From: Callorhinchus milii
Lineage: Eukaryota
Reading direction: 5' to 3'
NCBI RefSeq assembly: GCF_018977255.1
Contig: NW_024704745.1
Span: 12,152,001-12,216,000 of the forward strand
DNA: 64,000 nt
Part shown: piece by piece, positions 1 through 45,193 of the stretch
Layout: each line of letters opens with the position of its first letter
Numbering within the stretch: the stretch's first letter is position 1
Translations under genes and position numbers: made by a program
Notes under the pieces: model-generated
Told to the model about the DNA's origin: nothing
The model's database searches: none
What the model saw: only the letters and a program-made list of their open reading frames with translations

Positions 1-3000
1 GCCTGTGTCTCAGGCTCTCCCCTCTCTAACCCCTTGTTTCCCTGGTGCAATCTTCATCTTCAAATTCTCAATCCCCAAGTGCAGCCTTAGTTTCTCTCCA
101 TCTCTTTCTCTCTTGAACCCTCCCCACATTGCTCTTTCTGTGTTTTCTTCGGTTTCCCAGTTTAGCTTAAATGCAACTCCCCCTTGAGGTTCAAGCGCCA
201 ACTCTGTGTCAAAGCTCATTTTCTGCGAGCTGGATTGAGTGGAGCCAGTGGCTATTAATGTTTTCACTGTTATAGTGTGCCAGTAATTAGAGTCATAGTG
301 TATTAGCACTAATACGCTGCCATCTCCGAACCATCCACCAGCATGGGAACGGAATCCACTAAAAGAAAAGCCTACAGCAAGATCCCTCCCACTAACTCTT
401 TGCACTTTTGAATGTTTTAATCATGGAGGCACTATGACAAACAGAATCTTGCAGTTTTGGTTTCACTGTGATGCACTTTTATTAATGTTACTGGAAGGTC
501 TTATTTGGCTTGGTAGCGTTCCATTTGAGATACCTTCTGGGCTCCAGAAATAATGCATGAGCCCAGCCGACCTGGTGCATTAGGAGCCAGGGAAAAAAAA
601 CACTATGAACTCGGGGGAGAACTTCCAACAGAATGTGTGAACTTTAGAAAATCATTATTTTCTGCTTTGGGGGAAACAATAGATTGCAAAGGAATCAAAG
701 GTAAAAATAATAATGTATGTTGGTAAAGAACTCGAGATCCTATTCTAACGACATGGAGGTATCTTCCACCAAGGATAACAGTATTCACATTTAACTGTTC
801 ACTGTCCCAGACTGAATAATTTAAGTCCCAGACTGAATATGGATCCTCGGGCATTGCTATATTATGCATTATTCCAGCCCAGGACTGTGAAGGGTTGTTG
901 ACAGTTTTTTTTAATGTTTGATGATATGCTGGAGAGAAAAGATTAGAAAATACCATAAACTGCCTCAGCCACTTTTCCAAGTGCAGGTGAAGAGGTACAA
1001 AGGATGAAATTGGCTAATTTTCAGATACAAATCTGTGAAATATCAGTGAAACTTAGTTAAAAAAAAACTGAAAATGAGTAACATATTCATGAGAATATTC
1101 CAAAAACCTTTTGTGTTTTCTCCATTGCATACAAATGCTACTTGCTGTAGTGTAGTATATCTGCTAATTCTGATAAGTCAAAATAGCTCCCCTAAAAAAA
1201 ATATTAAGAGAGTTGTTTTATTTTCCGAATGATTGGGAATATCTTGGGAAAATAGGAGAGAAAAGGAAAACGGACATATTGTAATTATGGAGAGGAGCTC
1301 AAGGTCTGCACATCTGGTGTGACATTCCAGGTGTTTTGGCTTTTACTTACACACCCAGAGGGACAGGGAATTGCAGGTCAAATCCCCTGAAGCCTCCCAA
1401 GCTGGCTCAGGCCTAATTATAGAGTCCTGTCAGGCATTTATTACTGAGGAAAAAGACATATTACCTAAAAGGCAGGAGGAATATAAAATTCATTTGTTAA
1501 GAAAAACACATGTACTATCATATACACTGCGACTTTCTATCATGCCTGCATTTTGTTTAGCTAAAGAGCACACCAAAGTCATTAATTTTAAAAGGATATT
1601 TTTTGTGACTCATTATGTATTAAATTAAAACGAAACATCTTGTAGAATCTCAATTCCATATTTAATTGGAAAGACTATTTTTCTAGTTTTTTTTTTTACA
1701 CACACGATTAGCCAGTTGCATTAAAAAAATCTATTGATCCCCATCTGCCCCACACACTGCAATCTACTTTCACTCCGTGGCTGTTTGTGGGACCGGGCAT
1801 TGCGCAAATCGGCTGTTGCGGTCGCCCACAACAGATGCACAGCTTTATAGTGTGTCCTGTGAAGCGCTTTAACGTGTCTCGACAATGTAATAAGGTAATA
1901 TATCAAATGAAATGATTATTATTAACCCATCTCGGAAAAATAGTGCGCACAATGCTTGCCAAAGTTCCAACCAATTTAACAGAATTGCCTTGTTCTCACA
2001 AGTCATTTGGTTTACTATCCTATTTATTTTACATTATCGCTATTAATAATCCTTGCATTTGATACAGCGCCTGTTATGTCGGAAAACACTTCACAGGATT
2101 TTCTATAAAATGTAGTGACTGTATTTTGTAGTTGAATAGTTTATTAGATCAAATCCAGTGGATAAAACACTATCTGATCTTATAATAATAATACTTGCAA
2201 TTGATATAGTGCCTTATCACGTCAGAACATTCTCTCCCTTGCTGTAGGACAATCTTATTTTGGCCTGTACTGTAATGGTCCTTGGCAGCTGTGTTGATTA
2301 TTGGCATTAATCCCCAAACCCCCTGAAGAGATGCACTTAAATTTAACATGGATGGAGCCTAAGACATAATAATAATAATAATTCTTGTATTTGATATAAC
2401 GCCTTATCACATTGTTGAGACGACTCAAAGTGCTTCACAGAATATACTGTAAAGTAGTTTGACTGTGAATTTTGTGGGTGAAATGATGTGACATGTGTGT
2501 AAAGAGGAAAATGTACTTTTTTCAATGTACGACTCCCGTGTGCTGAGCGATTTAATGTCCGCTTTGCAGAAAATATATTTTACGCATTATTATTCAATTC
2601 TATTCAAAGATAATTTGTTTTGTTTAGGAAAAGTAGGAAATTCTCCTTGATATTTTACACAAATCATTGTATTAAAATGGGACAGTTGGATAAGTAAACT
2701 ACCAGATACTGGAATTGAATTCAACCAGACTGACAGGAATGAAAGTCAGTGAGGCCACAATAATAGCTGGTGAGGAACTTAAGGCTTCTATCTATATGAA
2801 AAACTGTATAGTTTAAGATTCTGAGCACAAGTACTGATACAGGATGGGGTTCCTAAAATCTGCCGTCTTTACAGGCGTTTGTGCCAAACTCGCTGGATAA
2901 ATTATCAGAACTGTAGAAGCCAATGGTGGTAGGAAGCATTAGGTTCAAATTAGTGTAGCACTAGTAAATACTTCACCATACAGAGTGTGTAAAGAAAAAA

Positions 3001-3124
3001 GGTAACTTTTTAAGCCGCAGCAGTTGGTAAATCATGACTGCCAGGCAGCTATCTTGGCTAATTCATAATTGATGGGCAATAGCAGCAGGTAATTAAATAA
3101 TAATCATTGTATTTGATGTGTAAT

Positions 3125-3420
3125 ACAATACAAATTTACATTTTTATATATAGCATCTTTCATGTCGGAAAGACATCCCATGGTACATGACAGTCCTGTC
3201 TTGGCACCCGAGTTGAGGGTAGGATTACAAGGGGTCGGGGTTGCGGAGGGGAATGATGACTGAAGGCCAGTCAAAGAGGAAGGTCTTGAGATGGACCTTG
3301 AAAGAGGTGAGGGAGGGTTGAGTTGGAGAGACTCCAAGATGGCGTCACAGACAGGGGGTCCAGACAGTTGAAAGCCCAACTGCTGATAGTGGGAAGGGTG
3401 AGGCGGGGGACATGAAGCAG
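3125..3420 (-). mobile_element. L2 LINE 3' fragment
   Basis: Reverse tail tatatagcatctttcatgtcggaaagacatccca, then gaggaaggtcttgagatggaccttgaa. Confidence 0.65.
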
Positions 3421-4401
3421 ACTGGTGACTGTTGAACAAAAGGAGCAGCTGGGACGGTACAGTAAGCGTCTTTCACATCAGCCAGACGTCTCAAAGTGCT
3501 TCACAGTATTTACTGATAGTGTATTGACTGTGTAATTTGTCAGTCAACTCGGCAGCCAATTTATGCACAGCAATGTCTCACAAATAGACGGAAATTGAAG
3601 GATCAAATTTAACTGCTGATTGGTGAGCAGTGGGACAACATGAACCAGAAACTAAACTCTGATAATAAACAAGGAAGACAGAGGGGAGACCGGGAGAGAA
3701 AAATAACAGACGACCAGGTAAAGGTAGAGAGAGAGAGACAGGAGGCAGAAGGCAAGCAAAGCAAGGCTTGGATAAGCTGAAGAGAGTGAAAATAAAATAC
3801 ACAAAATACACAGTCAATACATGGACTGACAGTCCGCCATGAGGAAAGCAGATGCATACCTAATCCTCATTAGTTTTTATCACAACTCAGTGTGCAGGTA
3901 CAACCCAGGAAGGTTAATCCCGAAATGCTCTCTCAGCGTTGCAGGCATGAGATAGCTGAATAAAAGGGGTCGTGTTATGAAGGCAGGGGCTGAATTCACG
4001 GTTCACTTCAATTCTGCTTTGCGTTCTCCTACAAAATTTGTCACTGCGGTGTAAAGGTTGTGGAATGTTAACCCTTCTTCCATTAATTTTCCTATGTGGC
4101 TGCACTAGCTCTCAAGGTACAAACCAAGCTCATTGCAGTGCATAGTATGTTATAACCAGCACTGAGTCAATAAAACTCCCAGTGGTCTAATTTTACCTGT
4201 CACTGAGTCGCTATCTAGTATGGTTGGTTTGGTTTCCTACTCAACTGCCGGCACTGACTAATTGAAACGCACAGTATCTTTTAAACATTTTGAAACTTAA
4301 CAGAATTAACTTCAGTTCAGAGTAAATTAAGTTAGAAACCAAAACAGAAGTCGCTGGGAACACTCAGTAGGTCAGGCAGCATCTGTGGAGAAAGGAAAGT
4401 G

Positions 4402-4438
4402 AGTCAACGTTTCGGGTCCACGACCCTTCGTCAGAACT
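4402..4438 (-). ncRNA. Minimal type I hammerhead ribozyme motif (intact core)
   Basis: Minus strand AGUU-CUGACGA-A-GGGUC-GUG-GACCC-GAAAC-GUU-GACU: stem I AGUU/GACU, stem II GGGUC/GACCC, palindromic AACGUU in place of stem-loop III. Confidence 0.75.
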
Positions 4439-5057
4439 AGGCCATGTTGGGAGGTAGAGGCTTTTAAGGACTAACAGAGAGGCAGGGCAAGGAAGACAAA
4501 GGAGAAAATGGGGTAGAGGTCGAGATGATGGGTTAAAGAGGTATTAATGATGCAAAACAAAGTGGGGGAAATTGCTACAAAACAGGCAGCAGAGAGAAAG
4601 GGTGTGCCTGGGACGCAGATGATGTGGTCACAGAAGAGGGGGAGGGAGAAGGTGCGCTTTTATTGTCTGAAATTATTGAAGTCAATATTGAGGCCAGATT
4701 GAGGTCCCTAGCAGATAGATGAGGTGCTGTTCCTCGAGCTTGCGCTGTGGTTCATTGGAACAGTGTAGCAGACCGTGGATGGAGAGGTCAGAGAGGGGAG
4801 GGAGAGAAGTCTCATCTATCTGCTAGGGACCTTACAGTCCTCTGGCCTCTTTCTGCTTGCGTTCTCCACCTTTGTTTTGCATTATTAACACCTCTTTCCC
4901 CCTGTTTTGTTGCATTTCCCCCCCCTTTGTTTTGCATCATTAAGACCTCTTTAACCCATCATCTCCTGAACTCTACCCTATTTTCTCCTTTGTCTTCCTT
5001 GCCCTGCCTCCCCGCTCTTTGTTAGTTCTTAAAAGCCTCTCCCTCTCAACATGCCCC

Positions 5058-5094
5058 AGTTCTGATAATAGGTCGTGGAACCGAAACGTTGACT
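5058..5094 (+). ncRNA. Degenerate hammerhead motif (core CUGAUAA)
   Basis: AGTT-CTGATAA-TAGGTCGTGGAACC-GAAAC-GTT-GACT; G8>A core change and weakened stem II. Confidence 0.55.
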
Positions 5095-5460
5095 CACTTT
5101 CCTTTCTCCATAGATGCTGCCTGACGTGCTGAGTGTTCCCAGCGACTTCTGTTTTTGTTTCAGATTTCCAGCATCTGCAGTATTTTGCGTTATGCTTAAA
5201 CTAAGTTAGAGGCTGAGTAGAACAGGAAATTGCCATGACTTAAAGTCATCTCCGGAAACTGTTAGTCCTTTTAGGCCATTCACAGTGTGAACAGTTAAAC
5301 ATTCTGCTCTTGCAGAGACTGGTGATGTAATGTTTTGAGCTCTGGATATAATATCAATTCAGGGAGCGAGGGAGGAGACAGAGTGGACACAGGTGCCTTG
5401 GTTATACTGAATGCTGCCAGTGTAACAACTCTGCAGCATCAATCTAAATTAGGTGTCAGC

Positions 5461-5830
5461 CTGCCTGGTTCAGTTGTTAGCACTTTTGCCTTCCGTGTTG
5501 TGGCTTTGAAATCATAGTCTAGACTGACCCTCCAATTCAGTGTTGGGGTACGCTGCCTCAGCCAGAGGTGCCATCCTTCAGATGAGACATTAAACCGAGG
5601 TCTCGTCTGCCTGTTTAGGTAGACATCAAAGATAGACAATGCTATTCAAAAAGTAAAGCGAGTTTCTTCTGAAATCCTGGCCAACAATCCCCAAGATAAA
5701 ATTGGTCATGGTTATTGGGGGATATTGCTTTGCGCAAATTGCCTGCCGCGTACTTCCCCACAAAAATACACACAGTCACACAACAACAAATTACATATGT
5801 ATGAGGCGTCCTCCTGACATATAGAGTATT
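5461..5830 (+). mobile_element. Deu-domain SINE (SacSINE1-like)
   Basis: gaggtgccatccttcagatgagacattaaaccgagg...gcgcaaattgcctgccgcg motifs, recalled from the shark DeuSINE consensus. Confidence 0.65.
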
Positions 5831-8800
5831 ATAATTTATAATTAATTTGAATGCGTGTGTAAGTGTGTATCCACCGTTTGTGTGTGTGTGTCTGTGCTTA
5901 TGTACATATATCTGTATGGGGAAAGGGTCAATCAATTCAAACTAGCAAAACTAATTATAAAAAGACTGGAGTTGTAGCAGCAGCATTAGCTGAAGGAATG
6001 GAATAGATGTGGGCTGTGATAGAGCAGAGGATATGGTAATTGGAATTGAGGTGGGGGAGATTCTGCGGGCAGAATTATTTTGGGGTCCTCTTACAGAAGC
6101 AAAATTGGGACCAGTGCAATAGAACCCTTTAATTAGGTTGTGCTCTTGTTTTCTCGAGCACTGCTTTGGAATATAAAAATTGTTTCAGATTATGCTGTTT
6201 TAGTGGTTGCATTTCAGTTTAATCTAATCACTGAAATGTAGGGTAACCATGGGAGAAGTACAGTACCAGACCGACCTAGTTAATTTAAAGGCCACATTGT
6301 TTACTGATATTCAGCAAATGGGACTGCAAAGAATAAGGGGCTCTGCACTGCATTACAAAGTAATAAATCTCTCTCGGCTGTTGGGAGCACACTATGAAAC
6401 CAGAGTTCAATGCTGAAACAGTCCAATTACACAGAATGTGTTGAATTTCGTATTATAATACGAGTCCTCTTGGCACCCTCATTAGCACAACCGTGTGAAG
6501 CTATGGGGAACTGAACAATCGAACACACACGATGTTCACATCTACAACATTAAGAGAAGCAATTACTTCAGCAATTGAATGTTTCCATCAGTTGAAGGGA
6601 TTGATTGAGAATTCAGACATCAAAGCTGTGTAAATTGGAAGAACAGTTCTTAAAGCATGCATTCAGCTTCTTATAGAATAACTGTCTTTTACTGCACAAG
6701 ACAAGTCCTCACTCATTTGGATTGCTTTATTCAGTCAATGTATTGACTATTACATGTTGTGTTTGATGATTGCTCAGCTAGTAAAATGAAGTGTGAAATG
6801 ATACACCTGGCTTTATTTTATTCCTGAAGAGCAAATGCATTAATCTGCTGAACAAATTCTGTCAAAAGGACTATTTCTAATGCGTGTAACTCAACCTAGG
6901 ATGTCTTGCTGAACAAACAGATCAATCTTTAATTCTGTATTCAGGTGGTAAAGTAATTGTTATATTGCTACAATAGCCTAGTTCACAGTAACTTGGAACA
7001 TAGATTTTGAGCACATTCTCACAGCAATATGTATTCACCATTTTAGGCAGGGATAGGAAATTCACCTGACCTCTCCGGAGAGTACTGACTTCTGGTTGAT
7101 TTTAAGTAATTTCTCAAAGTTGGATTCATCTGTTAATGATATAATCATTTTGCTCAAATGCTTGCACCTTTCGGATTCACAAAATTTCACTACTTTTACA
7201 GTACTGTGCTGTAAAATCTTCAAAGTTCTTGATAAAAATACGTAAAAACGAGATTAATTAATTAGTTAATTAATTAAGATTAATGCCGTGAATGCACTTT
7301 GTTCAAAGCCTAGTCAAGATTTGTGCCACTGATGGTGTTAAGATTTGTTAAAGATGTGGAATATAAATAAACCGAGATTTGGAAGAGAGTAAGCAGTAAT
7401 GGGGCTAAAGAAATAAAGCTAAATTCAATTAAAAAGGTGTTGTGGAGGGGAAAGAGCATATAGTCGTACAAAAGTGATTAAAATTCTTAGTACATATTTC
7501 TCGCCATATCTTTTTAAAGCCTTTTTAAATAAAAATCTCCCTTGTGTATCACTGGTGTTTTCTCAATTGAAATGCCTTGTGCGTTTATAGAAATGCAGTG
7601 CTGGTATTTTATTCCTGATCTTTTCTTTGTTCCTTCCTCAATTTTTTCAAACCATTACCAGTAATTGCGATTCAGTTAGTCACCTCGTCCATTCACTGTG
7701 ACAGAACACAAGCCATTTTTTTTTNAAAGAAATGAGGCATAAAATTAATCGTTGCATGTACAGGGCCTGTGGCAAATTGGAGTGGCACCTAGGAAGGTTC
7801 CAGTTCATTCTAAATATCCAAAATGATAAGGCCTATAAATGGCAAGTGTATGTGTTGCAACAGGGCAATTAAAGGCATCGGGGTCTAACATGTAGAATAT
7901 CTTAACTGTTTCTTAATGAAGAAATTTTGAAGTCTGTGACACCACTCAGGCTCCTCCGACTCGATCTATTTTTGAAGCCAGGTTCCCTTGAGTCGGCGTA
8001 ACAAACTCCAGATACTAAAAGGAGTCCTTCATTGTATTTCTTAATTGAGAAACACATCCAGAAATACTAAAAATTCGACCCCATTGCCTTAAATATCGGA
8101 AATGTTTGATCCTCCTTGTATTCTTTGAAATGGTCTGCAAACCCTGCAACGAGTCCTGGGAGCGATGGCATTTAGCAGACGAACACCACTGACATTTATT
8201 AGAGAAGAATCAGTGTAGTATAGTAACATTGTGTCCATTAATGGATGTCTGATCTGCTCAGCCTCATTAATCAATATTTATAGTGGATTCACTGTGCTAC
8301 TGACTCGCAAGTCTTCGAGTACCGCACAAAGCTCCGCAAATCCATTTGTCTGGGAGCTGCCGTCTATTCTCTTTAAATCGCCAGCTCATGCAGTGTGCTG
8401 TAAGCATACAGGCAAAGTCGAGGTTCAGCCACATGCAGGTGGCTTCTTTCTCCAATGGTTTCTCCAAATAAAAGACAAATGGGAAATATTGGTATCTTCG
8501 CCCCCCCCCCCACCCCACCCCAAGAGAAAAGCAGTAATCTTTTGCATTTAACAAAAGCTTGTCCAGCTCAGTGTTTTAAATGTTTTTCACTTGCCAGATC
8601 AACAATACTCAGGAGCTCGACTGACTGCCTTCAAGGCAAACTATTTGCATGAAGTCAAATGGGCCTCCAGCCATCGTTTCTGCTGCACCACTTACAATGT
8701 AGAGCAAGTGGCACAAACAAGATGTAATCCTTCTTCTAAATGCATCCTTTATTCTAAAATTGTCAATTAGATGCAGTGTAGCATTGCCAAACAGCCAGGT

Positions 8801-8984
8801 CACGAAGGAGATTAGTCCTTTTACTTTTGTTTTATTAATGTTATGTCACAATCTGTAGAGTCAGCAACCTGCAGGTTATTTGTAAATTCCACCCCCAGGG
8901 GTGGGATTAGCATTGGATTGTTAAAAGTGTTGTTAATACTTACTTTCATTTGGTGTAGCTTCTTTCACATCAGGGCTTTACAAA

Positions 8985-9260
8985 ATGCTTCACAGGATAT
9001 ATTGCAAAATGGAGTGACTCTGCGTTTTGTGCGCAATCGCGGCAGCAGATTTGCAATGGCCCCCAACAACGATGAAGTGAACAACAAATTTTATTTGGGG
9101 GGTTGTTAACCAGGATACTGGGAAAAACTCCCTTTTCTTTTCAAATAGTGCCATGGAACCTTTAACATCCACCTAAACAGACAGGACCTCGGTTTAACGT
9201 CTCATCTGAAGAACAGCACTGTATTGGAGTGTCAATTTAGACTATATGATTTCAAATTCC
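8985..9260 (-). mobile_element. Deu-domain SINE (SacSINE1-like)
   Basis: caaatagtgccatggaacctttaacatccacc...ggacctcggtttaacgtctcatctgaag, the reverse complement of the same motifs. Confidence 0.65.
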
Positions 9261-10708
9261 AGATGTTGGGAAACGTAGAAGTCAAAATTGTGACATTTGA
9301 TGTGATAATCGCATCATCAATTATCATCAGTCATCATGTACGATTGAATCATTGAATGATAGACACGGGTTTAACCTCCTAACCCTCCCCAGGTCACAAA
9401 GCCTCAGTGGGCAGCATTTGAGCTCTGAGACTCTACCCCACTTGTATATAAATACAAGTTGTTGATGAGTGCTGCTACATGGATACTCGTCTAACTAACC
9501 ATCAGCAGTTAAAAGTCCAACTATTGTGCTAACGTGTGTGTATGGTGGGTTAGGGCTTATACCTTTGTGTCTTTAGTTATTGACACACTCTCTGCCTCAC
9601 CATTTGAGTTTTCAGGCAATCTATCTCTACTCTCTGGGACTCTCTCTGAAATGTCCTGCTAATTGCAACCTCCCTTTCCTCTTTCAAAACTTGTTAGAAA
9701 ACTATTTATTTGAATCAGTCAACTCCCTCTTCCTCTCCCAATCTTAGGTTTCCACTTCCTCTCCATAACCATTTTGAGGCATATACTGAACACGTGATAA
9801 GGCACTGTATCAAATGCAAAGATTACTATTATATAAGTGCGTGTTGATGGTGTGATTGCAATTTTCAATAATGTGAAAATTTCTCATCAGATGCTCACAT
9901 TTTCAACCCGCATTGCTGATGGTTAACAGGAGCAACTTCAGAGCTTGTAACCCTAGCAAACAGTGGAAAGGACAGGATCCACCACTTTTTGGCTCTTAGC
10001 TGATGTTTGTGGTTTGCCCAGTTACGAGGTAAAATAATTTCACACTGGAGAAGTGAGACAGCTGTTAAACCTCTCCAGACAAATTAACTGTGAAGATTAG
10101 TCACCCAGGAACATCACTGACCACACAAGTGAGCATTCAGTTCCTCACAATTAATTCATTCACTGGATAGACAATGCAGAACGTGTAGCTGTCCACGTAG
10201 CAGTGTGAATAAATCTACTTACTTAACGGGCCGCTGGCTTAGAATGTCTTTGTGGCTTGTGCCGCATTTTGGCCACAAAATATACAGTCAATTAGAATTC
10301 TGATCAGCTGGACATTTGACACATGCAGAAACCATTAATGGGCTTAAGAGTTACCAAACCAGACTGAGAGATCTGCTTATGTTTCGCCCGCAAAATATAC
10401 AGTCAATTCCCTTTACAGTATATTCTGTGAAGCGCTTTGACGCGTTGCAAAGATGTGATAAAGTGTCATATCAAATGCAAAGATTATTATTATAACATCA
10501 GTCAAACTGATCCAGCCAGAGTTCCACTGAGTTGTATTTAACTTTGCTCTACAATTTATATACCTTTTCATATTATATTTCTATATTTAACATTTCCCAG
10601 GCAAGGAAAAACCTGAAGCAAGTTTCCTTCCAAACCACGAGTATTTGTGAGACACTGCTGTGCGCAATTTCGCCCATAAAATATACAGGCAATTCACTTT
10701 ACAGTATA

Positions 10709-10946
10709 CAAAAGGCAAAGTACTGCAGATGTGGGAAATCTGGTATAAGCACAGAAGTCGCTGGGAACATGCAGCAGGTCAGGCAGCATCTATGGAGAAA
10801 GGAAAATGAGTTAACGTTTCAGGTCAATGACCTTTTGTCAGAATCTTTCAGCAATGACCTTTCGTATTGCTGAAAGGTTATTGACCTGAAGCAGTGATTC
10901 ATTTTTCTCTCTCCATGGATGTTTCCAGGGACTTCTGTGTTTGTAT
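10709..10946. mobile_element. Palindromic 238-bp non-autonomous derivative of the same Penelope-like family, inserted in a SINE
   Basis: Left arm shares cagaagtcgctgggaac...caggtcaggcagcatct...gttaacgtttcaggtc with the 4337 element; right arm is inverted; perfect 14-bp TSD cactttacagtata at 10695-10708 and 10947-10960. Confidence 0.8.
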
Positions 10947-11379
10947 CACTTTACAGTATATTCTGTGAAGAGCTTTGAGATACCTCTACGATGTGATAAG
11001 GCGATATATCAAATTCAAGGATTATTTTTATTACTAGCCTCACTGTAGCATTATTGTACCAGTGAGCGGCTAGAGGGCTCGAGAACCTGTGTAAGCTGTG
11101 TCACCTAACAGGTGTCTGCAGGGAATTTACTGAAAAATGGCTGCAGCATTTGCTTACAAAAACAGTTACTATATTTGGTAGTAATTACTGTGAAACGCTT
11201 TGGCATTTTAAGGCACTATAAAAATACAAGTTTTTTTCTTTCTTCAGATAGAGTTCGATTTAGCTTAAAGTTGTAGAGATGTCTTTAACCCAAGTAGAAG
11301 ACAGTGTGGATGTCAATAAGGGAACAAGATGAACTTTTTTGTGCATTTAAATGACCAGAGCCTTTTTTTCTCCCTACAG

Positions 11380-11790
11380 ATTGCAAGTTGAAAGTTGACA
11401 AAATGAGGAGGAACCTTGTAGTCACAGAAAAAAGTGATGTCCACTTAAACTGCAGCATCCGAAACCAAACCAGCCCGGACGCACAGTTCGCTGTACTCTG
11501 GTACATGCAAAAATCACCAGACAAAAGCAACAAACTTATCCTGAAATCCAGACGGGATTCCGTGGTGGAGCATGGGAACTGGTTAGGCAGAGGCGAGAAG
11601 TCGAAGGAGAGACTTCAGTTTGACAAGCCCTCAACTGGACTGTACACTTTGGTCTTACAAAATGCCAACGTTGATGACAGCGGCTGGTACTACTGCCAAG
11701 TGGAGGAGTGGCTGCTGAACCCCAACGATGTTTGGTACAAGTTAGGAGAGAAGACATCTGAATCGACTGTTGTAACTGTGCAGCATCCAG
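11380..11790 (+). CDS. IGSF3: IGSF3 coding exon, V-type Ig domain (corresponds to human IGSF3 domain 6)
   Basis: Acceptor tttttttctccctacag|AT, donor CCAG|gtattg; 411 nt, phase 1-1. Translation (D)CKLKVDKMRRNLVVTEKSDVHLNCSIRNQTSPDAQFAVLWY...DDSGWYYCQVEEWLLNP has the Ig Cys/Trp/D-x-G-x-Y-x-C pattern and resembles human IGSF3 QLNCSVKSQTSQNSHFAVLWY (recalled). Confidence 0.93.
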
Positions 11791-11899
11791 GTATTGGGTC
11801 TATTGGGTTTATTCCTTTTGGAAAAACTTTCAAGTGTTGCCCTCTTCCCTAGAATGTACTGTTGGATGGAAGCAATGAATCGGAAAACAAAACATGAGT

Positions 11900-13697: not shown

Positions 13698-14270
13698 ACT
13701 GTTTATACAGAATGTGGCTTCGCACAGTTCTGTAACATAACCCAAAATCTTATCATTCCTGCCTGCAGGAAACACGTTTGCTGAGCCTTTCCACACACAG
13801 TGAAAACACAGCACACAGCTATTTTCCCACAGATATCGTACCAGCGGGATCCAGTTAATCATTAAATGGTTAGTGACACTGCAGTAGGACCACTTACGTA
13901 TCCAGAAAAAAAATCACTTGTACAGCAACAAATATACAGACATATGAAATTTACATATGCTGACCCTTTACCCCCACAGTCACTTAATAAGTAAGTGTTT
14001 CAATTGAGCTGTTTAACAGTTGACAGATAATCATTTACAAAGGTTGTGATGAAGAGTCATTAACATGTTCCTCAAATACAAATTTATCTGTTCGAACTGG
14101 AAGCCTTGAATGCAAATCATAATCGTTATTATAATACATTCAACAGAGCAGTATTTCATGGAAATGAACAGGGGATTGTTGATTGAGGTTTACGAAACTG
14201 CACACTTTATACAAAGAGACTAACTCATACTGGTGATAGCACCCTGCTTAGTCAGGTATTCACCAACACC

Positions 14271-14410
14271 AAACAAAAGGCAAAATACTGCAGAGGCTGA
14301 AAATCTGAAATAACAACAGAAGTCGCCGGGAACACTCAGCAGGTCAGGCAGCATCTATGGAGAGAGGAAAGTGAGTTAACATTTCAGATGGATTGCCGTT
14401 TGTCAAAACT
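14271..14410 (-). mobile_element. Single terminal arm of the Penelope-like family (hammerhead core decayed)
   Basis: aaaatactgcagaggctgaaaatctgaaataacaacagaagtcgccgggaacactcagcaggtcaggcagcatct..., homologous to the arms at 4337 and 10709. Confidence 0.75.
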
Positions 14411-14590
14411 AACACCCTGCTCAGTCAGTCAACCATTCATTAGCACACTGCTCAGTCAACCATTCACCAGCACACTGCTCAGTCAGTCAACCATTCACTA
14501 GCACACTGCTCAGTCAGTCAACCTTCACTAGCACATTGCTCAGTTATTCAAGCATTCACTAGCATACTGCTCAGCCAGTCATTCACTGCA
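14411..14590. repeat. Minisatellite, ~30-bp unit CACACTGCTCAGTCAGTCAACCATTCACTAG, about 6 copies
   Basis: Directly visible tandem units, degrading toward the 3' end. Confidence 0.85.
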
Positions 14591-16025: not shown

Positions 16026-16561
16026 TCCCAGACAAAATGTCGACAATCACTGTTAGGGCTTGCTTATGGGAAAAAAAGGTTCCTCTTCAATGAGGGAGAC
16101 CAGCATCTGTACAGAGCTATCCCCAGCATAAGGAAACAAGTTAAATGTCTTCAAGAGAATGAGTGGTGGGGAAAAAAAAGTCAAGAAAAAAAAATTGGCA
16201 ACAAGTTCTTTATATATCCTACATTGACCCACTTAAAGGAAGAAAGTCTGAATAGTTTCTCATGATATTCTGGTGCTTATCCAGCAGCACTAAATTGTTA
16301 AATGTTCAATTACAAAAAGAAATTGGAAAGCTCACTCAAGCTATCTTGTTTGCAACTGCTACAAATGATTTTGTTCGTTGATCAGTGCCTCCTTGCTAAT
16401 GGCTCATAGCGCTCAGGGATCCTATCCGCATGAAAGGTGCTAAGTAAATCCAAGTTGTTGTCAGAGACAGACTCTGCTTTGATAAGAAAATCCTTTTGCT
16501 GGTTGAGTTTGCTGTTAAATGAAATTGAAATCTCGCGTATATTTTTCCCTTGTGTCCACAG

Positions 16562-16972
16562 AAAACAATTTGCAAATCCTGAAAACTGAGCAGAACATAT
16601 CCATGCCGGAAGACAGCTGGATTCAGCTGGATTGTAACATCAGCAACCGCACCAGCTTGGACTCCCAGCTCTCTGTGACCTGGTATGTCTGGAGGATGCT
16701 GGAGCCTGAGAGGCAGCGCATTTTCAGACTGAATCGGAATTCTGTCTTCGAGTACGGAGGCTCAGCCGACAACGCTGTGAGACTGAAGGACAGGCTGCAG
16801 TTCGAAAGGTCCTCCACTGGTCTGTACAGTTTAGGGCTACAGAGAGCAACCACTGGCGACAGCGGAGGTTACTACTGCCATGTGGAGGAGTGGCTACTTG
16901 ACCCCCAAAACATCTGGTACAAAGTGGGAGAGGATCAGTCTGGAATGACTGCTGTCACTGTACAACAGCCAG
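16562..16972 (+). CDS. IGSF3: IGSF3 coding exon, V-type Ig domain (domain 7)
   Basis: Acceptor tttttcccttgtgtccacag|AA, donor CCAG|gtactg; 411 nt, phase 1-1. QLDCNISNRTSLDSQLSVTWYVW...GDSGGYYCHVEEWLLDP matches IGSF3 domain 7 NRTSITSQLMVEWFVW (recalled). Confidence 0.93.
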
Positions 16973-18339
16973 GTACTGTATGAGTCTTAATCCCCCCACT
17001 TTAGGATAAGATTTAATGAGTTGTTTTCGAAAGCTATCGCACTGACAGGCATCAGGAACACATTACCAGTAATGTGTAGTTCAGGGCTTGCCTTCATATC
17101 CCATGTGGCCCCTTACTAATGGCCAGTGGCTGAGTGCTTTGGTGGATTAAGAATGGTCGCTGTTTGATAAGGCGGAACCAGAATTCTAATGGATTTCTGA
17201 TCAGCACAATGCGATTCGCCTCCACACCGGAAACAAATTATAGCAGGTTTCAGATCATGCCGCTGTTTACGAATTTAGTGCTGCAATCACACCAGGGAAA
17301 TCACAAATACACAGGGTCAGATTACTGAATCTGAAATCGACAATCTTAAACTGCCCACTAAACTCCCAACAAAACAACACATCATATGCAGGAATGTAAC
17401 GATCCTCCCTCTAGGATGGAACCTGCTTTGTGCCCTGAAAAATTACAGTGGCACATCACATTGTCCAGGATTGCATTGTGGATGTCGCTTACTTTGCTTA
17501 CTAGCATGTGTGTGTTTTTGCCTTCCCCATCTTCTCCACTCCCTCCTCTCCTCCTTCCCCCAAGTGAGTTGGAGCAGGCTTGTCAGTAGGTAGGTTTATG
17601 AGTGGGCAGCTGGGTGAACTCGATTACACGCACCGAGTGCTCCATTTACTATCAAACTCTGAAAGACACCATGCTCAAAAATGCAGATACACATGATACC
17701 AATGCACAGCAGCAATCCACAGAGGAAACCAGAGCAGTATTGTTATGCACAATCCCAATGCTGACAATCCTACCTGACTGAAGCAAAGGTGTAAATTGGC
17801 ACTGGTTTGAGACCCACTATCCTGTAGGATGGTGGGTCTCAAAACAGTGTTAATTCAATGCATCCCACAGAAGTCAGATAGTGGTCTCGTCATTAAATTT
17901 CCCAAGTGCAGTCATCTCCCTCCACTGCCCTGGCCTTGTTTCTCCAACAACATTTGCACACTATTTCTTTGTTATCTGCTTTGTTTCATTTCAGTTGAAA
18001 CATGATTTTTTGGGGGTGTATTAATGAACAAGTGCACAAAATAAAGTTTAACTGATCCTCCAGCAAGATATTCGCAACGTGATACTCAAAGTTTCTGACT
18101 AAAACTGCAACAAGTTAATTGCGGTCTTGACACTGGCCCATTCAGTTGCCTACTCTACCTCTCCAGCCTCTGCACGCATGTTGTGCCTCACACAATGGGA
18201 TATGTTACAACTGTGGACATGCACTGCTATGAGCCAGCTGCCTTCAGCCCATTCGCATTACACCATTAGTGGATTATTTCCTCCTGTTTATTTAGAAGGG
18301 GGGAATTGGGAAGCGAGAAGAGAGATCAATGGTTAAGTG

Positions 18340-20595: not shown

Positions 20596-20974
20596 CGCAA
20601 GTGTGCCCAGAGAGTGAAAGGTGATAGTTGGGAGAGGAAGGAACAACTGAGGGAACAACAATAGGTGCACTTCCCAGAAAGGTCACTGACTAGGGTTGAG
20701 GAGCGGGAGCCCTTGCTACCTAATCTCATGGGTATAATAAACAGTACCTCCAACCTCCGACCCAACCCTCATCGATTTTCCTTGCAGATAAAGAATAGCC
20801 ACTTGAGCAAGACAGCAAAGACATTCAGCTTTTACGAAACAGTACTCTGACCATGAGTTAGCACCTTCAGGAAAGGAGGAGACATTAAAAGAGGGGAAAG
20901 AACCTGCAGATTTATGAAATTTTGATTGTTAAAAACCTTTTCTCCCATTTTGTTTCCTGTCACCCTCACAAAAG

Positions 20975-21397
20975 AATTCAAGATGCAGGTGGATAAAACT
21001 GAATTGAATATCACAGTATCGAACAAGGGCAACTTTCAGCTCAACTGCAACGTGACATTCCGAACACGAGGGGATTCACGATTTGCTGTGTCCTGGCTGG
21101 CGTGGAAATCCAAAGGGGCCGTTGACAGGATGGTGAAGGAAACTATTTTAAAAATCGATCAAAATTCGGTCTTCGAGTACGGCAGCTCACGCAGTGGAGC
21201 TGAAGGGATGAAGGACAGACTGAAGCTAGAGAGACCCTCCAGTGGATTGTACAGCTTGACAGTGAGAAACGCCGACACCAGCGATAGTGGGAGCTACTAC
21301 TGTCATGTGGAGGAGTGGATTCAAAATGCCAACAATGCCTGGTATAAACTAGGGGAAGGGGAGTCTGGACTGCTTATCATCACCATACAAAACGCAG
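20975..21397 (+). CDS. IGSF3: IGSF3 coding exon, membrane-proximal V-type Ig domain (domain 8)
   Basis: Acceptor cctgtcaccctcacaaaag|AA, donor GCAG|gtaact; 423 nt, phase 1-1. FQLNCNVTFRTRGDSRFAVSW...SDSGSYYCHVEEWIQ. Confidence 0.9.
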
Positions 21398-22289
21398 GTA
21401 ACTTGTTCCCTTCATAATCATATAATGACCATAGTGTTATAAATTCTACGTGAGCAGTAGAAAGTAACTACCTGACAGGTGTATGTTTATTCCATAAATC
21501 AGAAGTGGTTTTGGAAAAGCTGTATTTATTGGTTAGTATTAATGCAAAAAAATATAAACGGTATAATCGTAGTGTCAAGTTTTGAGAGGAGTACAGCACC
21601 ACAGTGGACACTTCCTCTTAGAAACAGAAAGGAATCTGAGGGACGGTCACCCTTGACCGCCCCCATGTGTTTGTTTCAGAATAGCATTTTTGGTCGACTG
21701 CTTAATTTAAAGTGTAGCGTAATAACTGGGTTTCTGACACTAGGTTGGAATTTGTGCAATGAAATTTGTCTGTATGTCATTTAGAGAAAAAAGTATTTTT
21801 ATCCTATCTGTGAACTGAATTTCCCAGGCCTGGAGGGGATACCAATTGAGCTTTGGAATTTTGATGGGGAGCCCAATTAAATGCAAGGATTCTCAATAGT
21901 GGTTGCATTTGGTATAGTCCCTTATCGCATTGTTGAGATGACTCAAAGTGCTTCACATGATGTACTGTGAAGTGCAGTGACTACTCATTTTGTACCAGAC
22001 CACAGTAGCCAATTTGCACACAGCAATGTTCCACAACTTGCCATGAAGTGAAGAATTAGTTTTATGAGGGGATTATTGTCCAGGACACTGGCATGGACTA
22101 GTTGGACCAAATTAACTGTTTCCATGCTATAGAATCAATGTGAGTGGTACAAAGTACCTAAGGCCAGATGTATTATTATTATTGTTATGTATATTTATTC
22201 CATAAGTCAGAAATGGTTTTGGAAAAGATGTATTTATTGGTTAGTATTAATGCAGAAATAAAATAAACGATACAAACCCTGGAAAGGAG

Positions 22290-23020: not shown

Positions 23021-23306
23021 TGTTGTTGTATAATTCCATGTTTTTGTAGTTGACTTGTATCCCAATATTCAGTGATATTTAGCTTAGTGTGCAACTTTGA
23101 AGGAATTAGTGTCTCTTTACACCAACACTCCTCCACTGCCAGGTTATTTACTTCATTCAGGAAGCCAGAATGGTCTGGGCCCAATGGCTGTCACTCAATT
23201 TTCATTTTGATGAAAACATAAGCACCAACCAAAAGGATGAGGAGTTTAAAATAATAAATAAGCATTTCGAAATAAATTAACGACCCTTCGCTATTCTTCC
23301 TTCCAG

Positions 23307-23557
23307 GTTCTTCTTTGCAAGAGGCAATTTGTTCAAACGACGCCCTTTTCTACTTCATATTTTTCTACCCATTCCCGATTTTTGGAATTCTTCTCATCGC
23401 CATTTTGCTGACACGGTACAAAACCATGAATGCGCAGAAGAAATCTGATGGTAAAAACGGCGTCCCCTTGCTCTGGATAAAGGAGCCAGCAGTGACTTAC
23501 TCTCCAACCAGCCTCGAGCCACCGGATTTCAGAATAGGACCAGGAGGACTTGCTTAG
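23307..23557 (+). CDS. IGSF3: IGSF3 last coding exon: transmembrane helix and cytoplasmic tail, stop TAG
   Basis: Acceptor ctattcttccttccag|GT. GSSLQEAICSNDALFYFIFFYPFPIFGILLIAILLTRYK...SDGKNGVPLLWIKEP..YSPTSLEPP is nearly identical to the IGSF3 C-terminus (ICSNDALFYFVFFYPFPIFGILII...DGKNGVPLLWIKEP, recalled). Confidence 0.95.
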
Positions 23558-28109: not shown

Positions 28110-29160
28110 ACAACAACAACAACTTGGATTTATATAGTGCCCTCCACGCCGGACGGCTTCTCAGAGCGCTTTACAGTTTAGGATTCCGGGGCTGAGACAG
28201 GGGGAAGGGTGGGAAGGTGACCAAAGGCCCGGTCAAAAAGAAAGGTCTTCAGCAGAGACCTGAAAATGGGAAGGGAGGGAACGAGACGATGGGAGTGAGG
28301 AAAGCAGTTCCGGAGCCTCAGGGCATAATGGCTGAAGGCATGGCCGCTGAGGGTAGAACCGAGGACTTGGGGAACAAGGAGGAGGCCAGACCCGGAGATC
28401 AAAGGCAACGGACACTGTGCTGAGGAGAGAGGAGGTCAGAGAGGTCGGGGGGTGCAGAGGAGTGCAGGGACTTGAATACGAGGGTGAGGATCTTGAAATC
28501 AATCCTCTCTGGGATAGGGAGCTAGTGCAGTCTGGCAAGGACTGGGGTGATCGGGGAGCGGAGCTTGGTGCGAGTGAGAATGCGAGAGCAGAGTTCTGAA
28601 TGATTTGGATTTTATAAATGGTAGTGGAGGGGAGACCGGCGAGGGGAGCATTTGAATAGTCCAGCCGGGAGGTGACAAAGGCATGGACCAGAGGTTCAGC
28701 GGCTTTTGGGGAAAGGTATTGGCGGAGACGGCAATTCGTTGGAGATGGAAGAAAGCGGCGCTGGTGAGGGACCAAATGTGGGGGAGGAAGGTTAATTGGG
28801 GGTCGAACCTGACGCCTAGGTTGCGTACAGGTTCGGAGAGTTTTAGGGGGAGGTTGGGTAGGTGGAGGAGGTGAGGACCATGAGATTTTAGACGTTGATG
28901 AGAGCCGAAGAATATGTCTTCCGTCTTGTCAACGTTCAGCTGAAGGAAGTTTGCGCTTATCCAGCCCCTGAGATCTGACAGGCAGACTGACAGAACATCA
29001 GGGGACTGGGGGTCCCAAAGAGAGGTGGAAAAGTAGAGTTGGGTGTCATCTGCGTGCATTTGGAAATGTACGCCATGTCTGCAGATGACGTCCCCAAGAG
29101 GGAGCATGTAGATCAGAAAGAGGAGGGGGCCAAGGATGGATCCTAGGGTACCCCACAGGT
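28110..29160 (-). mobile_element. 5'-truncated L2 LINE with reverse transcriptase remnant (frameshifted)
   Basis: GSILGPLLFLIYMLPLG...HADDTQLY...LQLNVDKTE...VRNLGVRFDPQLTF; AFVTSRLDYSNA; FSHYALRLRN spread over three frames; (caa)n tail at 28110. Confidence 0.92.
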
Positions 29161-31934
29161 GACCGACTAGATCTTGCACAGCTGGTCTGAATGAATCAGT
29201 TCATAGAGCTCACAGCCCTTGAACGTAATATTGGTGGGAGTGCATTTGAATGAGTTACGTTCTTACAGGAAAGGAACCCATCCTTAGTATGAGATGTGTA
29301 GGTGTATGATTTACAAAAGGTCGAAGGCTTGAAATTTGGGGAATGGAGGGGGTTGAACGGAGGTGAATTTTTTTGATGCCTTTTATAAAACAGGTTTTAC
29401 CAATAAAGCTTTAGAAATGTAACGTAACTTTTGTTATTAATTATTGTGAAATGTGGCTCTCTCTACATAATGAGAAAACTTTTAGAATAAACAAAGTGTG
29501 GCAAAGAGTTTGGGCTTGAGAATGTCAGTATATCGAGTAGTAGGTTGGGTCAAAAGCTGCTGATTGTCTTTAGGTGGGATTCATAAGGAACAGGAAAGGG
29601 CTTCGAGTGTTCCACATCAGAACAGTGCAATGGCCTGTATTAGTGAGTGCCTTAAAGATAATCCAAAACTGAATTCACTGATAGATAAATTGGTTTGGGA
29701 AAAGACCATCAAACTGCAACTGAAAAACAGCAAATTAGATGATCAAATGCTGAATTGCGTTGAAGCCTTTGGAGACTGGAGGGTTCAGGTTATAATCTCC
29801 GCATGTCATTCAGTGCATTCCTGTGGAATAATCCTGCACATCTCTTTCATTCTAGCCTGTAGTTGTTGTGGATTCAGCTCTGGAACATGATTGGTACCGA
29901 AAACACAGCGAGTTTGTGACGCCACACTGTTACTAGTATGGCTTGTTGAACTGGCACACTGCGCAAAGCAGTAGCATCAGTGAGTGTACTGGAACCGCAC
30001 TTCAAAGCCATTGATCAGTGAACTTGATTTAAAAATGCACAGGGGGATGGATGTTGATCTTCAAAACTGTCTAAGGTTTTGTGCCCACTGTAGAAGAATG
30101 TTGTGTTCAACACTGTTGAATGAATGTAAGTGTACCCCATTATTAACAGTGCCCTTTAATTAATATTTAACTGAAGATAAAGTTCTGCGGATAGTGCATT
30201 AAGAATGCTGTACACATATCCTGTGGGGAATCTGACACTGAAGCAAAGGTGCTGTTGCCACAATTTGCCGTCAGCAGAAATTGTAACAAAAGACATCTTT
30301 GTAACCCTAGATAAAAGGTTTTTAGCTACTTTATAATGCAGGTTGCATGCAAAGTAATGAATACGTAAGACAGACTTACAGCCATTGATAGAAATTATTT
30401 TGGGTGGGGGGGGGGGGGGGGGGTATGAAAATATGGTGTGTGTGTGTGTGTGCGTATGGTTGCAATCCAAAGGATATCTGCATGGAAGTCCTGCACAATA
30501 AACTCTTATCCATCTATATTCGCCTTGGGACATCCTCCTGACATGAAAGGCACTATACAAATCTAATTTTGTATTATAATTGTGTATTACATTCCAAAAA
30601 TTCAACCCCACATGAGACCAATTTCAGAGATTCTCACAATATTTAATTTGAAGACTCAGGGCTTGTTTCCCATGGAGTTTTGCTCAGCCAATTGATTGAT
30701 ACGTGCAGAAACAAGAAACCCATTATACTTAAGCATATCCAAACCAAACTGCTAAGAAACCCACAAGTTACTCGGAAATTTCCATTTGTTTCACAGTATT
30801 TTGGGAATTGCACAATGCTGAATTCCAATACAAATATCAGTGAATGCGTTAAATACAATGCTGAAGAGATTGATCCAAACATAAATACCCTGTAGCCCAT
30901 CACTCTTTAAATGTCATGTATTTTGGTACTGGAATAAATGTGTTTGTGTTGTGGGGGTGTAAGGGAGAGAATGTAGTTGATGAGTGAACCATGTCTTTTC
31001 AGATGCTTCCAGAAATCACCTTTATACTGGAAGTTCTCACTGCACCATTCAAACTGAAATTACCTTTTAACAGCAGCTCCATTATTTGGAATTTGTTCCA
31101 GGCAGAATTGAAGAACTGGTTGAATGACATTCCTATATATATAATAATAATCCTTGCATTTGATATAGAAATCACTGTAAAGTGGATTGATTGACTGTAT
31201 ATTTTGTGGGCTAAATATCTTTTAATCCACTTCATTAGGGAATGATCTCAGTCGTTGCTTCAAACTGCCAGCTCGTACCATCATTCTGCAGTTCAATCTG
31301 GGGATTAACCCAAATCTGCTCAACAAGAGTGAAATTGGGAACCTCAGTTCAATCCCTTCTCTGGCTGCACTTTGTAACTTGCAAATTTGAATTTCAAAGA
31401 GGAAATGGCTTGGATGTTTGAAGCTTCTGCTAACTAATAATTATTTGCATCCTTTTTAAAGTTTGCCAAGTTTGAACTGAACATCTTGACACATTCAGAG
31501 CAGATGCCTCATAAAAACATATATACCGTATGGTGATACCACCTGCAGTGGCAAACTTTGTTTTATATGCATTCAAATAACGCTGCATCTTTCCATCTAC
31601 TTATTGCTATGCCAACTGAGATACTAAGCAAGCTCATGTTTTAGACATGTAGAGCTTTGTTATTAACTCTACCGGTGACAATCTGGTCAGATTCAATCAG
31701 CTAAGTATGAACAAAGAATTGGTCAAAAGCCCGATCACTAAAACTACATCAGTTATTCCATTTGTTTCAGGTTTAGAGATATTGCAAGCAGAATCAATAG
31801 GGAAAAATCAAGTCTCCTGAAGAAAGTACTCTATGCACAAATGTATTTACTTAGTTACAACAAAAACAACAACATGTGTAGAATGAATAGGAATCCTTCA
31901 GACAGTTGGATACTGGCCCTTTACCTTATAATAA

Positions 31935-32266
31935 ATAATAAAATAATCCTTGCGTTTGATATAGCGCCTTATCATGTCTTAATTGTAAATGAATTGACTG
32001 CATATTTTGTGGGCAAAAGGCAGCAGCCAATTGCGCACAGCAGTGTCCCACAAACAGTCGTGGATTAAGTGAACAAATTACTAATTTTTTTGAAAGAATT
32101 ATTACCCCTGGAAAATCGACTAACAAGCGGATTCCTATTTAATGTTAGGTAAACAGACGCATGTGGAGTAAGGAAACTTGCCCAACATTTCGCCCTGCCC
32201 GGGAATCAAACCCAGGTCCTCTCGTTTGCGAGGCGAGTGCTCTAGCCACTAAACTACAAAACTCCA
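31935..32266 (-). mobile_element. tRNA-Ala(CGC)-derived SINE, full length
   Basis: Reverse complement begins ggagttttgtagtttagtggctagagcactcgcctcgcaaacgagaggacctggg; core and tail shared with the other copies. Confidence 0.85.
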
Positions 32267-35892: not shown

Positions 35893-36212
35893 GGAGTCCT
35901 GTAGCTCAGTGGTTAGAGCACTCGCTTTGCAAGCGAGAGACCTGAGTTCAATTCCAGGCAGAGGGCGAAACCTTGGGCAAGTTTCCTTACTCCACACAGA
36001 GCCTAATAATAATCCCTCCAAAAACCAAAAACAATAATAAATTGGTCATTTTCAATCTACGACTGTTTGTAGGACATTGCTGTGCCAATTGGCCGCCGCG
36101 TTCGCCCACAAATATACAGTCAATTCACTTTACAGTGTGTTCTGTGAAGCGCTTTGGGACGTCCTCCCGACGTGAAAAGCGCTATATCAAATGCAAGGAT
36201 TATTATTATTAT
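35893..36212 (+). mobile_element. tRNA-Ala(TGC)-derived SINE, short subfamily
   Basis: ggagtcctgtagctcagtggttagagcactcgctttgcaagcgag (A box), gttcaattcc (B box), Deu core, tail gggacgtcctcccgacgtgaaaagcgct...(tta)n. Confidence 0.88.
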
Positions 36213-41128: not shown

Positions 41129-41516
41129 GGAGTCCTGTAGCTCCGTAGTTAGAGCACTCGCCTCGCAAGCGGGAGGACCTGGGTTCGATTCCCGGCAGGG
41201 CGAAATGTTGGGCAAGTTTCCTTAATCAACAAGCCTCAATTTGCCTAGCAGTAAGTAGGAATCCGGTTGTTAGTCGATTGGCTCATCGCTTTTCCAAGGG
41301 TAATAATTCCTTCAATATAGATAAAAATAATTTGGTCACTCAATCCACAACTGTTTGTGGGACACTGCTGTGCGCAATTGGCTGCCGCGTTTCACCCACA
41401 GAATATACAGTCAATTCAATTTACAGTATATTCTGTAAAGCACTTTGAAGACACCTTGCTATATTAAATGTAAGGATTATTATTATTGTTGTTGTTATTA
41501 TTATTGTTATTGTTGT
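41129..41516 (+). mobile_element. tRNA-Ala(CGC)-derived SINE, full length
   Basis: ggagtcctgtagctccgtagttagagcactcgcctcgcaagcgggaggacctgggttcgattcccggcagggcg, then core, tail and (tta/ttg)n. Confidence 0.88.
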
Positions 41517-44214: not shown

Positions 44215-44381
44215 NNNNNNNNNNNNNNNNNNNNNNNNNNNNNNNNNNNNNNNNNNNNNNNNNNNNNNNNNNNNNNNNNNNNNNNNNNNNNNNNNNNNNN
44301 NNNNNNNNNNNNNNNNNNNNNNNNNNNNNNNNNNNNNNNNNNNNNNNNNNNNNNNNNNNNNNNNNNNNNNNNNNNNNNNNN
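44215..44381. other. Assembly gap (167 N)
   Basis: Run of N inside the G/T array. Confidence 1.
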
Positions 44382-45183: not shown

Positions 45184-45193
45184 GTATGTGATA

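Follow-up and report, generated by a model that had tools for sequence, protein, structure and literature searches.

A 64,000-nucleotide stretch of Callorhinchus milii DNA (contig NW_024704745.1, positions 12,152,001 to 12,216,000; the window) was analysed, with all positions counted from its first letter. The window carries the exons of a plus-strand gene resembling IGSF3 and, upstream of them, an inverted-repeat unit with a remnant of a GIY-YIG endonuclease, two hammerhead-type motifs, a tail at one end and a short target-site duplication (TSD). The unit proper (874-bp, 4337–5196) very probably consists of two 5'-truncated 3' ends of a Penelope-like element (PLE), which arrived together in one old insertion. 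Two further copies of the same family lie in the window. The features are collected in Table 1.

Table 1. Position and nature of the PLE copies and host-gene exons in the window.
Feature	Position	Strand	Sequence	Remarks
Left TSD	4323–4336		TAAATTAAGTTAGA	Adjoins outer end of inverted arm, with 2-nt ambiguity
Inverted 5'-truncated PLE copy, tail-less	4337–4810	−		Endonuclease C-terminus, 3' untranslated region (UTR), hammerhead; from copy alignment and protein homology
Predicted minimal hammerhead, intact	4402–4438	−	AGTT CTGACGA A GGGTC-GTG-GACCC GAAAC GTT/GACT	Antisense to host gene
Endonuclease remnant, piece 2	4660–4698	−	SGLNIDFNNFRQ	Followed by stop codon 4660–4662; frame differs from piece 1
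GIY-YIG endonuclease C-terminal remnant, piece 1	4703–4810	−	..SDLSIHGLLHCSNEPQRKLEEQHLIYLLGT	Includes conserved catalytic Glu region (LEEQ)
Direct 5'-truncated PLE copy with tail	4811–5196	+	LIYLLGTLQSSGL (start, 4811–4849)	From copy alignment
Degenerate hammerhead copy	5058–5094	+		CTGATAA core (G8 to A), two helix II mismatches; sense to host gene
One-sided 35-nt 3' tail	5162–5196	+	AGATTTCCAGCATCTGCAGTATTTTGCGTTATGCT	Absent from left arm
Right TSD	5197–5210		TAAACTAAGTTAGA	From repeat scan and chance estimate
Second independent insertion, same PLE family	10694–10960	−	TCACTTTACAGTATA (TSD)	Element 10709–10945; perfect 15-bp TSD
V-set immunoglobulin (Ig) exons of IGSF3-like gene	11355–11849, 16519–16980, 20926–21414	+		Map to last three Ig domains
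Third copy of family 3' end, with tail	14271–14411	−		5'-truncated inside hammerhead; adjoins 31-bp minisatellite
Transmembrane/tail exon	23276–23554	+	..NDALFYF.FFYPFPIFG..GKNGVPLLWIKEP..	As in IGSF3 matches

Organization of the inverted-repeat unit

An earlier note on this DNA had described the unit as a pair of reverse-complementary arms, and the arms were recovered by repeat scan, blastn and global alignment. The global alignment of 4335–4586 with 4901–5161 gave 230 identical positions out of 252 (91%), 9 gapped nucleotides and a Kimura two-parameter (K2P) distance of 0.093. The pair was aligned by blastn over 261 nt at 88%, and the repeat scan broke the arms into blocks of 147, 65 and 43 nt with 90–95% complementarity. 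The position originally assigned to the right arm (4910–5170) was about 9 nt off. When the reverse complement of the left half was aligned to the right half, the two proved to be copies of one sequence that meet head to head at 4810/4811 with no filler between them.

The 14-mer TAAA(T/C)TAAGTTAGA flanks the unit as a direct repeat with a 13/14 match, as had also been claimed (the 14-mer at the target site is also written TAAAYTAAGTTAGA). Arbitrary pairs of 14-mers in the window reached 13/14 at a frequency of 2.3e-6, and allowing ±3 nt of slack at each boundary raises the chance expectation to about 1e-4. The left boundary of the duplication is the end of the inverted repeat, and the right one is the family-defined 3' end.

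Read on the minus strand, the left copy contains the endonuclease C-terminus, its stop codon (4660–4662), about 220 nt of 3' UTR, the hammerhead motif (4438–4402) and the box CACAGATGCTGCCTGACCTACTGAGTGTTCCCAGCGACTTCTG, and it ends at ..GTTTC without the 35-nt tail. The box, conserved as ATAGATGCTGCCTGACCTGCTG, forms part of the 3' end of the element together with the minimal hammerhead ribozyme (min-HHR) motif and the 3' UTR. The right copy begins at a point 87 nt closer to the 3' end of the element, at a second, plus-strand copy of the LIYLLGT segment (4811–4849), which the earlier note had pointed out and which is indeed present. Part of its interior is deleted, and 37 nt are duplicated (4866–4902/4921–4957). 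Beyond its arm, the tail separates the arm from the right TSD; this tail, which has no left counterpart, had been overlooked. The unit thus shows the pseudo-long terminal repeat (pLTR) organization, with inverted arms and an abutting inverted 5'-truncated copy; a direct pLTR is lacking in the copy at 4337–5196.

An inverted repeat could also be made by snap-back (self-primed) second-strand synthesis from a single complementary DNA (cDNA). The centre of the unit has the look of a hairpin loop, as the stretch 4724–4810 is found in the left copy alone, between the halves of a perfect 22-nt inverted repeat, formed according to the repeat scan by the plus-strand LIYLLGT copy and 4702–4723. A snap-back copy cannot exceed its template arm, yet the left arm is 87 nt longer at its 5' side and the right arm 35 nt longer at its 3' side, and therefore neither can be a snap-back copy of the other. 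The one-sided tail, moreover, recurs at 10709–10740. This origin is accordingly very unlikely, and the reciprocal asymmetry of the arms argues for two separate initiations, one per target strand, at two start sites.

Endonuclease remnant and relationship to Penelope-like elements

The minus-strand peptide reported for the centre of the unit reads exactly as claimed, split over two frames, with QIDETSLPPLSDLSIHGLLHCSNEPQRKLEEQHLIYLLGT in one (4685–4822) and GPQSGLNIDFNNFRQ followed by the stop codon in another. The second piece is out of frame with the first because of a 5-nt deletion in the left copy relative to the right copy, which retains the reading frame in the copy alignment.

Both pieces were matched in a tblastn search by the protein P0005 of Hypanus sabinus. 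Residues 329–358 aligned to 4792–4703 and the last ten residues (363–372) to 4695–4666, each with 70% identity (joint E 4.7e-9), and the two pieces run colinearly along the final 44 residues of P0005. A HMMER search with the 46-aa piece gave two matches at E ~5e-4 among 1.84 billion representative proteins. Both of these end in ..GLLHC....RKLEE.HLIFRLGSL...G.N..F, after a GIY-YIG-like ..IYIGETKRRLGDRF.. segment, and nearly all of their relatives come from elasmobranchs (Leucoraja, Hypanus, Mobula, Rhincodon, Stegostoma and Chiloscyllium). Pfam gave no match on either remnant piece because the pieces are too short, and the GIY-YIG assignment was established via the homologues instead. GIY-YIG matches, ranging from weak to threshold, were obtained in nine of the ten relatives tested, and the longer relatives P0085, P0082, P0039 and P0046 combine an upstream RVT_1 domain with a C-terminal GIY-YIG domain, scored at the Pfam gathering score or higher. 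A family hidden Markov model (HMM) of 22 members, run against 3964 stop-delimited pieces of the window, matched the remnant at E 1.3e-6 (HMM positions 478–510 of 523). Weak matches of the same model at 30874–30984 (+) and 31225–31440 (−) were rejected, having E>3, no inverted repeat and no tblastn support.

A reverse transcriptase (RT) followed by a C-terminal GIY-YIG domain is the defining order of the open reading frame (ORF) of endonuclease-encoding (EN+) PLEs (PMC8557442). These homologies indicate that the unit descends from a PLE of this kind, with an ORF for RT and C-terminal GIY-YIG. The earlier note had named a tBLASTn search of the peptide as the check on this identity; the family match reported above was its outcome, and the attempt at refutation failed. 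With regard to the clade, the closest homologues carry a CX4CxxC linker (PCKRNKCYTC) and a CCHH motif (C..C...H..H), in a region absent from the window copy. A CCHH motif and a CX2-5CxxC linker have been assigned to Neptune and Nematis, not to Penelope/Poseidon (Craig et al., PMC8557442), and by these motifs in the homologues of other species the element is probably Neptune-type.

Hammerhead motifs in the two arms

Minimal hammerheads of metazoan PLEs are described as having no helix III, a helix I of 4–5 bp, a G10.1–C11.1 pair and a palindromic 15.2–16.2 pair (PMC4209133). A strict min-HHR descriptor, applied to both strands of the window, had the left-arm motif as its sole match. This motif is predicted to be a minimal hammerhead, at a level far beyond chance. 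The right-arm motif failed both the strict and the relaxed descriptors. Of the hammerheads claimed for both arms, only that of the left arm is thus borne out; the right arm holds a copy disabled by the G8-to-A change and the helix II mismatches. Two more copies belong to the second insertion. The hammerhead at 10809–10845 also has G8 changed to A, with its first helix II pair compensated (A-U for G-C), and the sense-strand arm at 10873–10945 has its hammerhead core deleted.

The ribozyme prediction has evidence against it as well. The shuffle statistic (0.007 descriptor matches per window in 300 dinucleotide shuffles, none with a 4/4 helix I) is indicative only, as the descriptor follows published criteria but was drafted with the motif already in view. 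The Rfam hammerhead families (type I/II/III, HH9 and HH10) gave no match at E<=10 in 3800–5800, and no Rfam hammerhead reached the gathering score anywhere in the window, the sub-threshold matches being to microRNA, CPEB3 ribozyme and small nucleolar RNA models at chance level. In our reading, min-HHRs fall outside the curated Rfam models, having no intramolecular helix III. Covariation in helices I and II was not significant in an underpowered comparison of five sequences (91% of cells paired, two compensatory pairs; 121/500 shuffles).

Within this transcription unit, the hammerhead copies in sense orientation to the IGSF3-like gene are all dead, and the sole intact copy is antisense. All five differences between the hammerheads at 4402–4438 and 5058–5094 are derived in the sense arm, and the polarisable differences in the adjacent 100 nt are divided 2:2. 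The bias in derived differences by outgroup polarisation is anecdotal and not significant (hand estimate p ~0.17). If such a bias held genome-wide, sense-orientation min-HHRs might cleave host pre-mRNAs in vivo and so be purged or inactivated, an idea to which we give little credence.

Related copies in the window and in Hypanus

The second insertion shares the composite build of the 4337–5196 unit, with short inverted arms and a 32-nt tail (10709–10740) at one end only. The TSDs of the two differ in length, being 14 bp (13/14) at 4323–5210 and 15 bp (15/15) at the second insertion. The tail was found in two further window copies, both on the minus strand, namely at 10709–10843 and at 14271–14411 (in the latter, at approximately 14271–14305). 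The third copy also abuts a minisatellite with 27–31 bp units (14405–14560), and one diverged unit lies on its other side (14237–14269); a long TSD and an insertion into the minisatellite array are indistinguishable at this site.

The Hypanus sabinus locus L001, which encodes P0005, has a stop codon, about 210 nt, a min-HHR and a GATGCTGCCTG box, in that order. Downstream of the stop codon it reads AGTC CTGATGA A GGGTCTCGGCCC GAAAC GTC GAC and then ATAGATGCTGCCTGGCCTGCTG. The order and spacing equal those of the window copy, and the min-HHR is homologous in position to the left-arm motif. The tail is present in a neighbouring fragment, L001_b, as GATTTCCAGCAGCTGCAG, and the copy that follows the ORF, L001_a, is without it. 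From this order, spacing and tail pattern it follows that the arms are PLE 3' UTR/pLTR sequence and the tail an optional feature of the family, in agreement with published descriptions of PLEs.

These copies also bear on whether the unit is a PLE product at all. Long terminal inverted repeats (TIRs) with a TSD look like a foldback element, and the unit might accordingly be a non-autonomous foldback or DNA transposon like a miniature inverted-repeat transposable element, with TIRs of ~250 bp; it might also be a non-LTR retrozyme, as the hammerhead is shared with retrozymes, which have been proposed to be PLE derivatives (bioRxiv 10.64898/2026.07.22.740005). However, the ends of the unit are asymmetric, with the tail at only one, and the TSD length varies within the family. 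The interior is PLE endonuclease C-terminus in both orientations, and the copy at 14271–14411 has a single arm. As for retrozymes, the repeat scan gave no tandem direct repeats that carry the hammerhead. The hammerhead motifs face in opposite directions, and the unit retains part of a coding sequence. We consider a foldback or retrozyme origin extremely unlikely and treat the unit below as a PLE insertion.

One insertion or two

PLEs typically show an inverted 5'-truncated copy together with a 30–40 bp tail at only one end (Craig et al., PMC8557442). In an in vitro study of 2024, a purified PLE protein cut and extended both strands of the DNA and started reverse transcription at two RNA sites, which delimit the tail (PMC11167929). 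Dual min-HHRs on opposite strands, 100–700 bp apart, are known from metazoan PLEs (PMC4209133). Judged from the arrangement of its parts, the unit at 4337–5196 is best explained by a single insertion event, which we favour strongly over two. The nuclease of the element would have cut both target strands, with about 14 bp between the nicks, and each 3'-OH would have primed reverse transcription of element RNA. The outer start site would have given the arm with the 35-nt tail and the inner one the tail-less arm. Both cDNAs would then have stopped short and been joined, and filling of the staggered nicks would have produced the 14-bp duplication. Later decay would account for the ~9% divergence, for the frameshifting 5-nt deletion on the left, and for the deletion, the 37-nt duplication and the loss of the hammerhead core on the right. 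The 9% divergence of the arms and the 1/14 mismatch of the TSD are mutually consistent and agree with an old event.

Two independent insertions could also have built the unit if an older truncated copy later received a second PLE copy, oppositely oriented, at its 5' end. The 9% divergence and the indel differences between the arms would suit such a history, and recognition of PLE sequence by PLE nucleases has been reported (PMC11167929 citing Pyatkov 2004), which makes insertion of element into element possible. Yet a single 13/14 duplication encloses the whole composite and coincides precisely with its outer ends, and the repeat scan reported neither a direct repeat around either half alone nor a separate one at the internal junction (4797–4810 versus 5197–5210). 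The second locus in the window, moreover, repeats an identical composite within a perfect 15-bp TSD, and the tail asymmetry is systematic and appears in the literature as the signature of one event (PMC8557442). Two insertions are therefore unlikely.

Some points nevertheless weigh against the reading of the unit as a single PLE insertion. The copy has no RT sequence, because of its 5' truncation, and its identity as a PLE rests on ~44 residues plus the non-coding architecture. The single event is inferred rather than demonstrated. The 9% difference between the arms and their several indels are expected from age, yet they are also compatible with two different template RNAs.

Host gene and predicted RNA structure

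When the three V-set exons were joined, all named top matches were IGSF3 or IGSF3-like proteins, with 42–47% identity for the best full-coverage matches and 32–47% for all named ones; full-length paralogues of >720 aa were outside the length filter of this search. A PDB search with one Ig exon returned only antibody V domains and was uninformative on gene identity. No exon-like sequence was found with an Ig-exon HMM in the 11 kb upstream of the Ig exons, and Pfam found nothing in ten long stop-free stretches in 1–9100, which is consistent with intronic sequence. The location proposed earlier, an intron of IGSF3, holds for the host, an IGSF3-like gene on the plus strand by its best named matches; the intronic placement is deduced, as the window does not reach the exons further upstream. 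IGSF3 orthologues have additional Ig domains on that side, and the intron just before the Ig6 exon is therefore the most likely location of the element.

The plus-strand RNA of 4323–5210 was predicted to fold with −560 kcal/mol, compared with −282 ± 8.5 kcal/mol for shuffled sequences (z = −33), and the arms paired almost entirely. The long double-stranded RNA (dsRNA) hairpin suggested in the earlier note is thus reproduced in silico, with a length of ~250 bp. As read from its sequence, the unit now offers neither a coding frame nor a functional ribozyme on the strand that is sense to the host gene. The only property that can be predicted for it is that its intronic plus-strand RNA can fold into this hairpin.

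Other features

Five public elasmobranch gene models encountered in the homology searches (P0036, P0040, P0057, P0003 and P0002) have PLE ORF fragments under host-gene names or combined with other domains (DUF4518+GIY-YIG). The names carried by such models include 'divergent protein kinase domain 1C isoform X2', 'chitinase domain-containing protein 1 isoform X1' and 'mucin-2 isoform X2'. These models are likely to be annotation chimeras that arose from intronic PLE copies.

Downstream of the IGSF3-like tail exon, a 233-aa stop-free stretch at 28502–29200 (−) has a C-terminal part of RVT_1 (..LGPLLFLIYM..HADDTQLY..; 27.4 bits, against a Pfam cut-off of 29.6) and looks like a fragment of a long interspersed element. 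The Rfam transfer RNA (tRNA) model had four matches above the gathering score (30–54 bits), at 32199–32256 (−), 35899–35961 (+), 41131–41203 (+) and 48672–48734 (+). Because three of the four span only part of the model, they are probably heads of tRNA-derived short interspersed elements (SINEs) and not tRNA genes. About 6 kb of low-complexity tandem arrays, with very long stop-free frames on both strands and N runs at 42912–43141 and 44215–44381, occupies 41700–47600. Further downstream, a 400-aa open frame rich in K, E and S and with no Pfam match (53295–54494, +) precedes a segment resembling an exon (57869–58363, +), which bears the SNF2 motif DDMGLGKTLTMIAVILAQ and in which SNF2-rel_dom scored 23.1 bits, below the cut-off of 24.9. 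Together the two suggest a plus-strand gene for an SNF2-family helicase.

Significance and comparison with known systems

PLEs are present in all vertebrate lineages surveyed (PMC4350176), and the unit at 4337–5196 is an ordinary decayed insertion of this class, for which inverted arms, a tail, a minimal hammerhead and a TSD have already been described. A single locus adds little weight, as both the insertion structure of PLEs and their minimal hammerheads are documented. The two composites of the window are nevertheless clean genomic cases in which one event would have left one tailed and one tail-less arm, and they fit the mechanism with two start sites and use of both strands that was proposed from in vitro work (PMC11167929). 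In annotation, inverted units of this kind can be mistaken for DNA transposons. The unit is also a candidate source of intronic dsRNA.

The closest likeness is to vertebrate EN+ PLEs (Neptune/Poseidon; Arkhipova 2006; PMC8557442). The shared features are the end of a GIY-YIG ORF, a hammerhead within the 3'/pLTR part, strong truncation at the 5' side beside an inverted 5'-truncated copy, a 30–40 bp tail at one end only and a TSD of variable length, whereas the copy at 4337–5196 keeps only ~44 ORF codons and has neither RT nor a direct pLTR. For PAc, the Poseidon element of Anolis carolinensis (PMC11167929), two start sites together with cleavage and extension of both strands predict one tailed and one tail-less arm, which matches both 4337–5196 and 10709–10945. 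PAc belongs to another clade and species, however, and the in vitro data are its own. In addition, the PAc hammerhead overlaps the start of the ORF, whereas that of the window lies ~220 nt past the stop codon of a truncated copy.

The left-arm motif agrees with the min-HHRs of metazoan PLEs (Cervera and De la Pena 2014, PMC4209133) in its CUGANGA and GAAA boxes, the lack of helix III, the G10.1–C11.1 pair, the palindromic 15.2–16.2 pair and a 4-bp helix I, and the unit has the dual motifs on opposite strands a few hundred bp apart. It differs in that helix II is 5 bp long, compared with 7–8 bp in Schistosoma, and in that one of its copies is mutated in the core. L1 twin priming resembles the proposed mechanism in that reverse transcription is primed from both target strands within a single event, which leaves an inverted 5' segment inside one TSD. 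The segments of L1, however, come from different parts of the RNA, whereas both window copies start at the 3' end, so that their arms form a true inverted repeat, and they would use two defined start sites. Finally, the unit shares with intronic pairs of inverted SINEs, such as inverted Alu elements, which are dsRNA and ADAR substrates, a predicted long imperfect intronic duplex. Its hairpin differs from theirs in that it would come from a single element, in a cartilaginous-fish-like genome, as predicted by folding alone.

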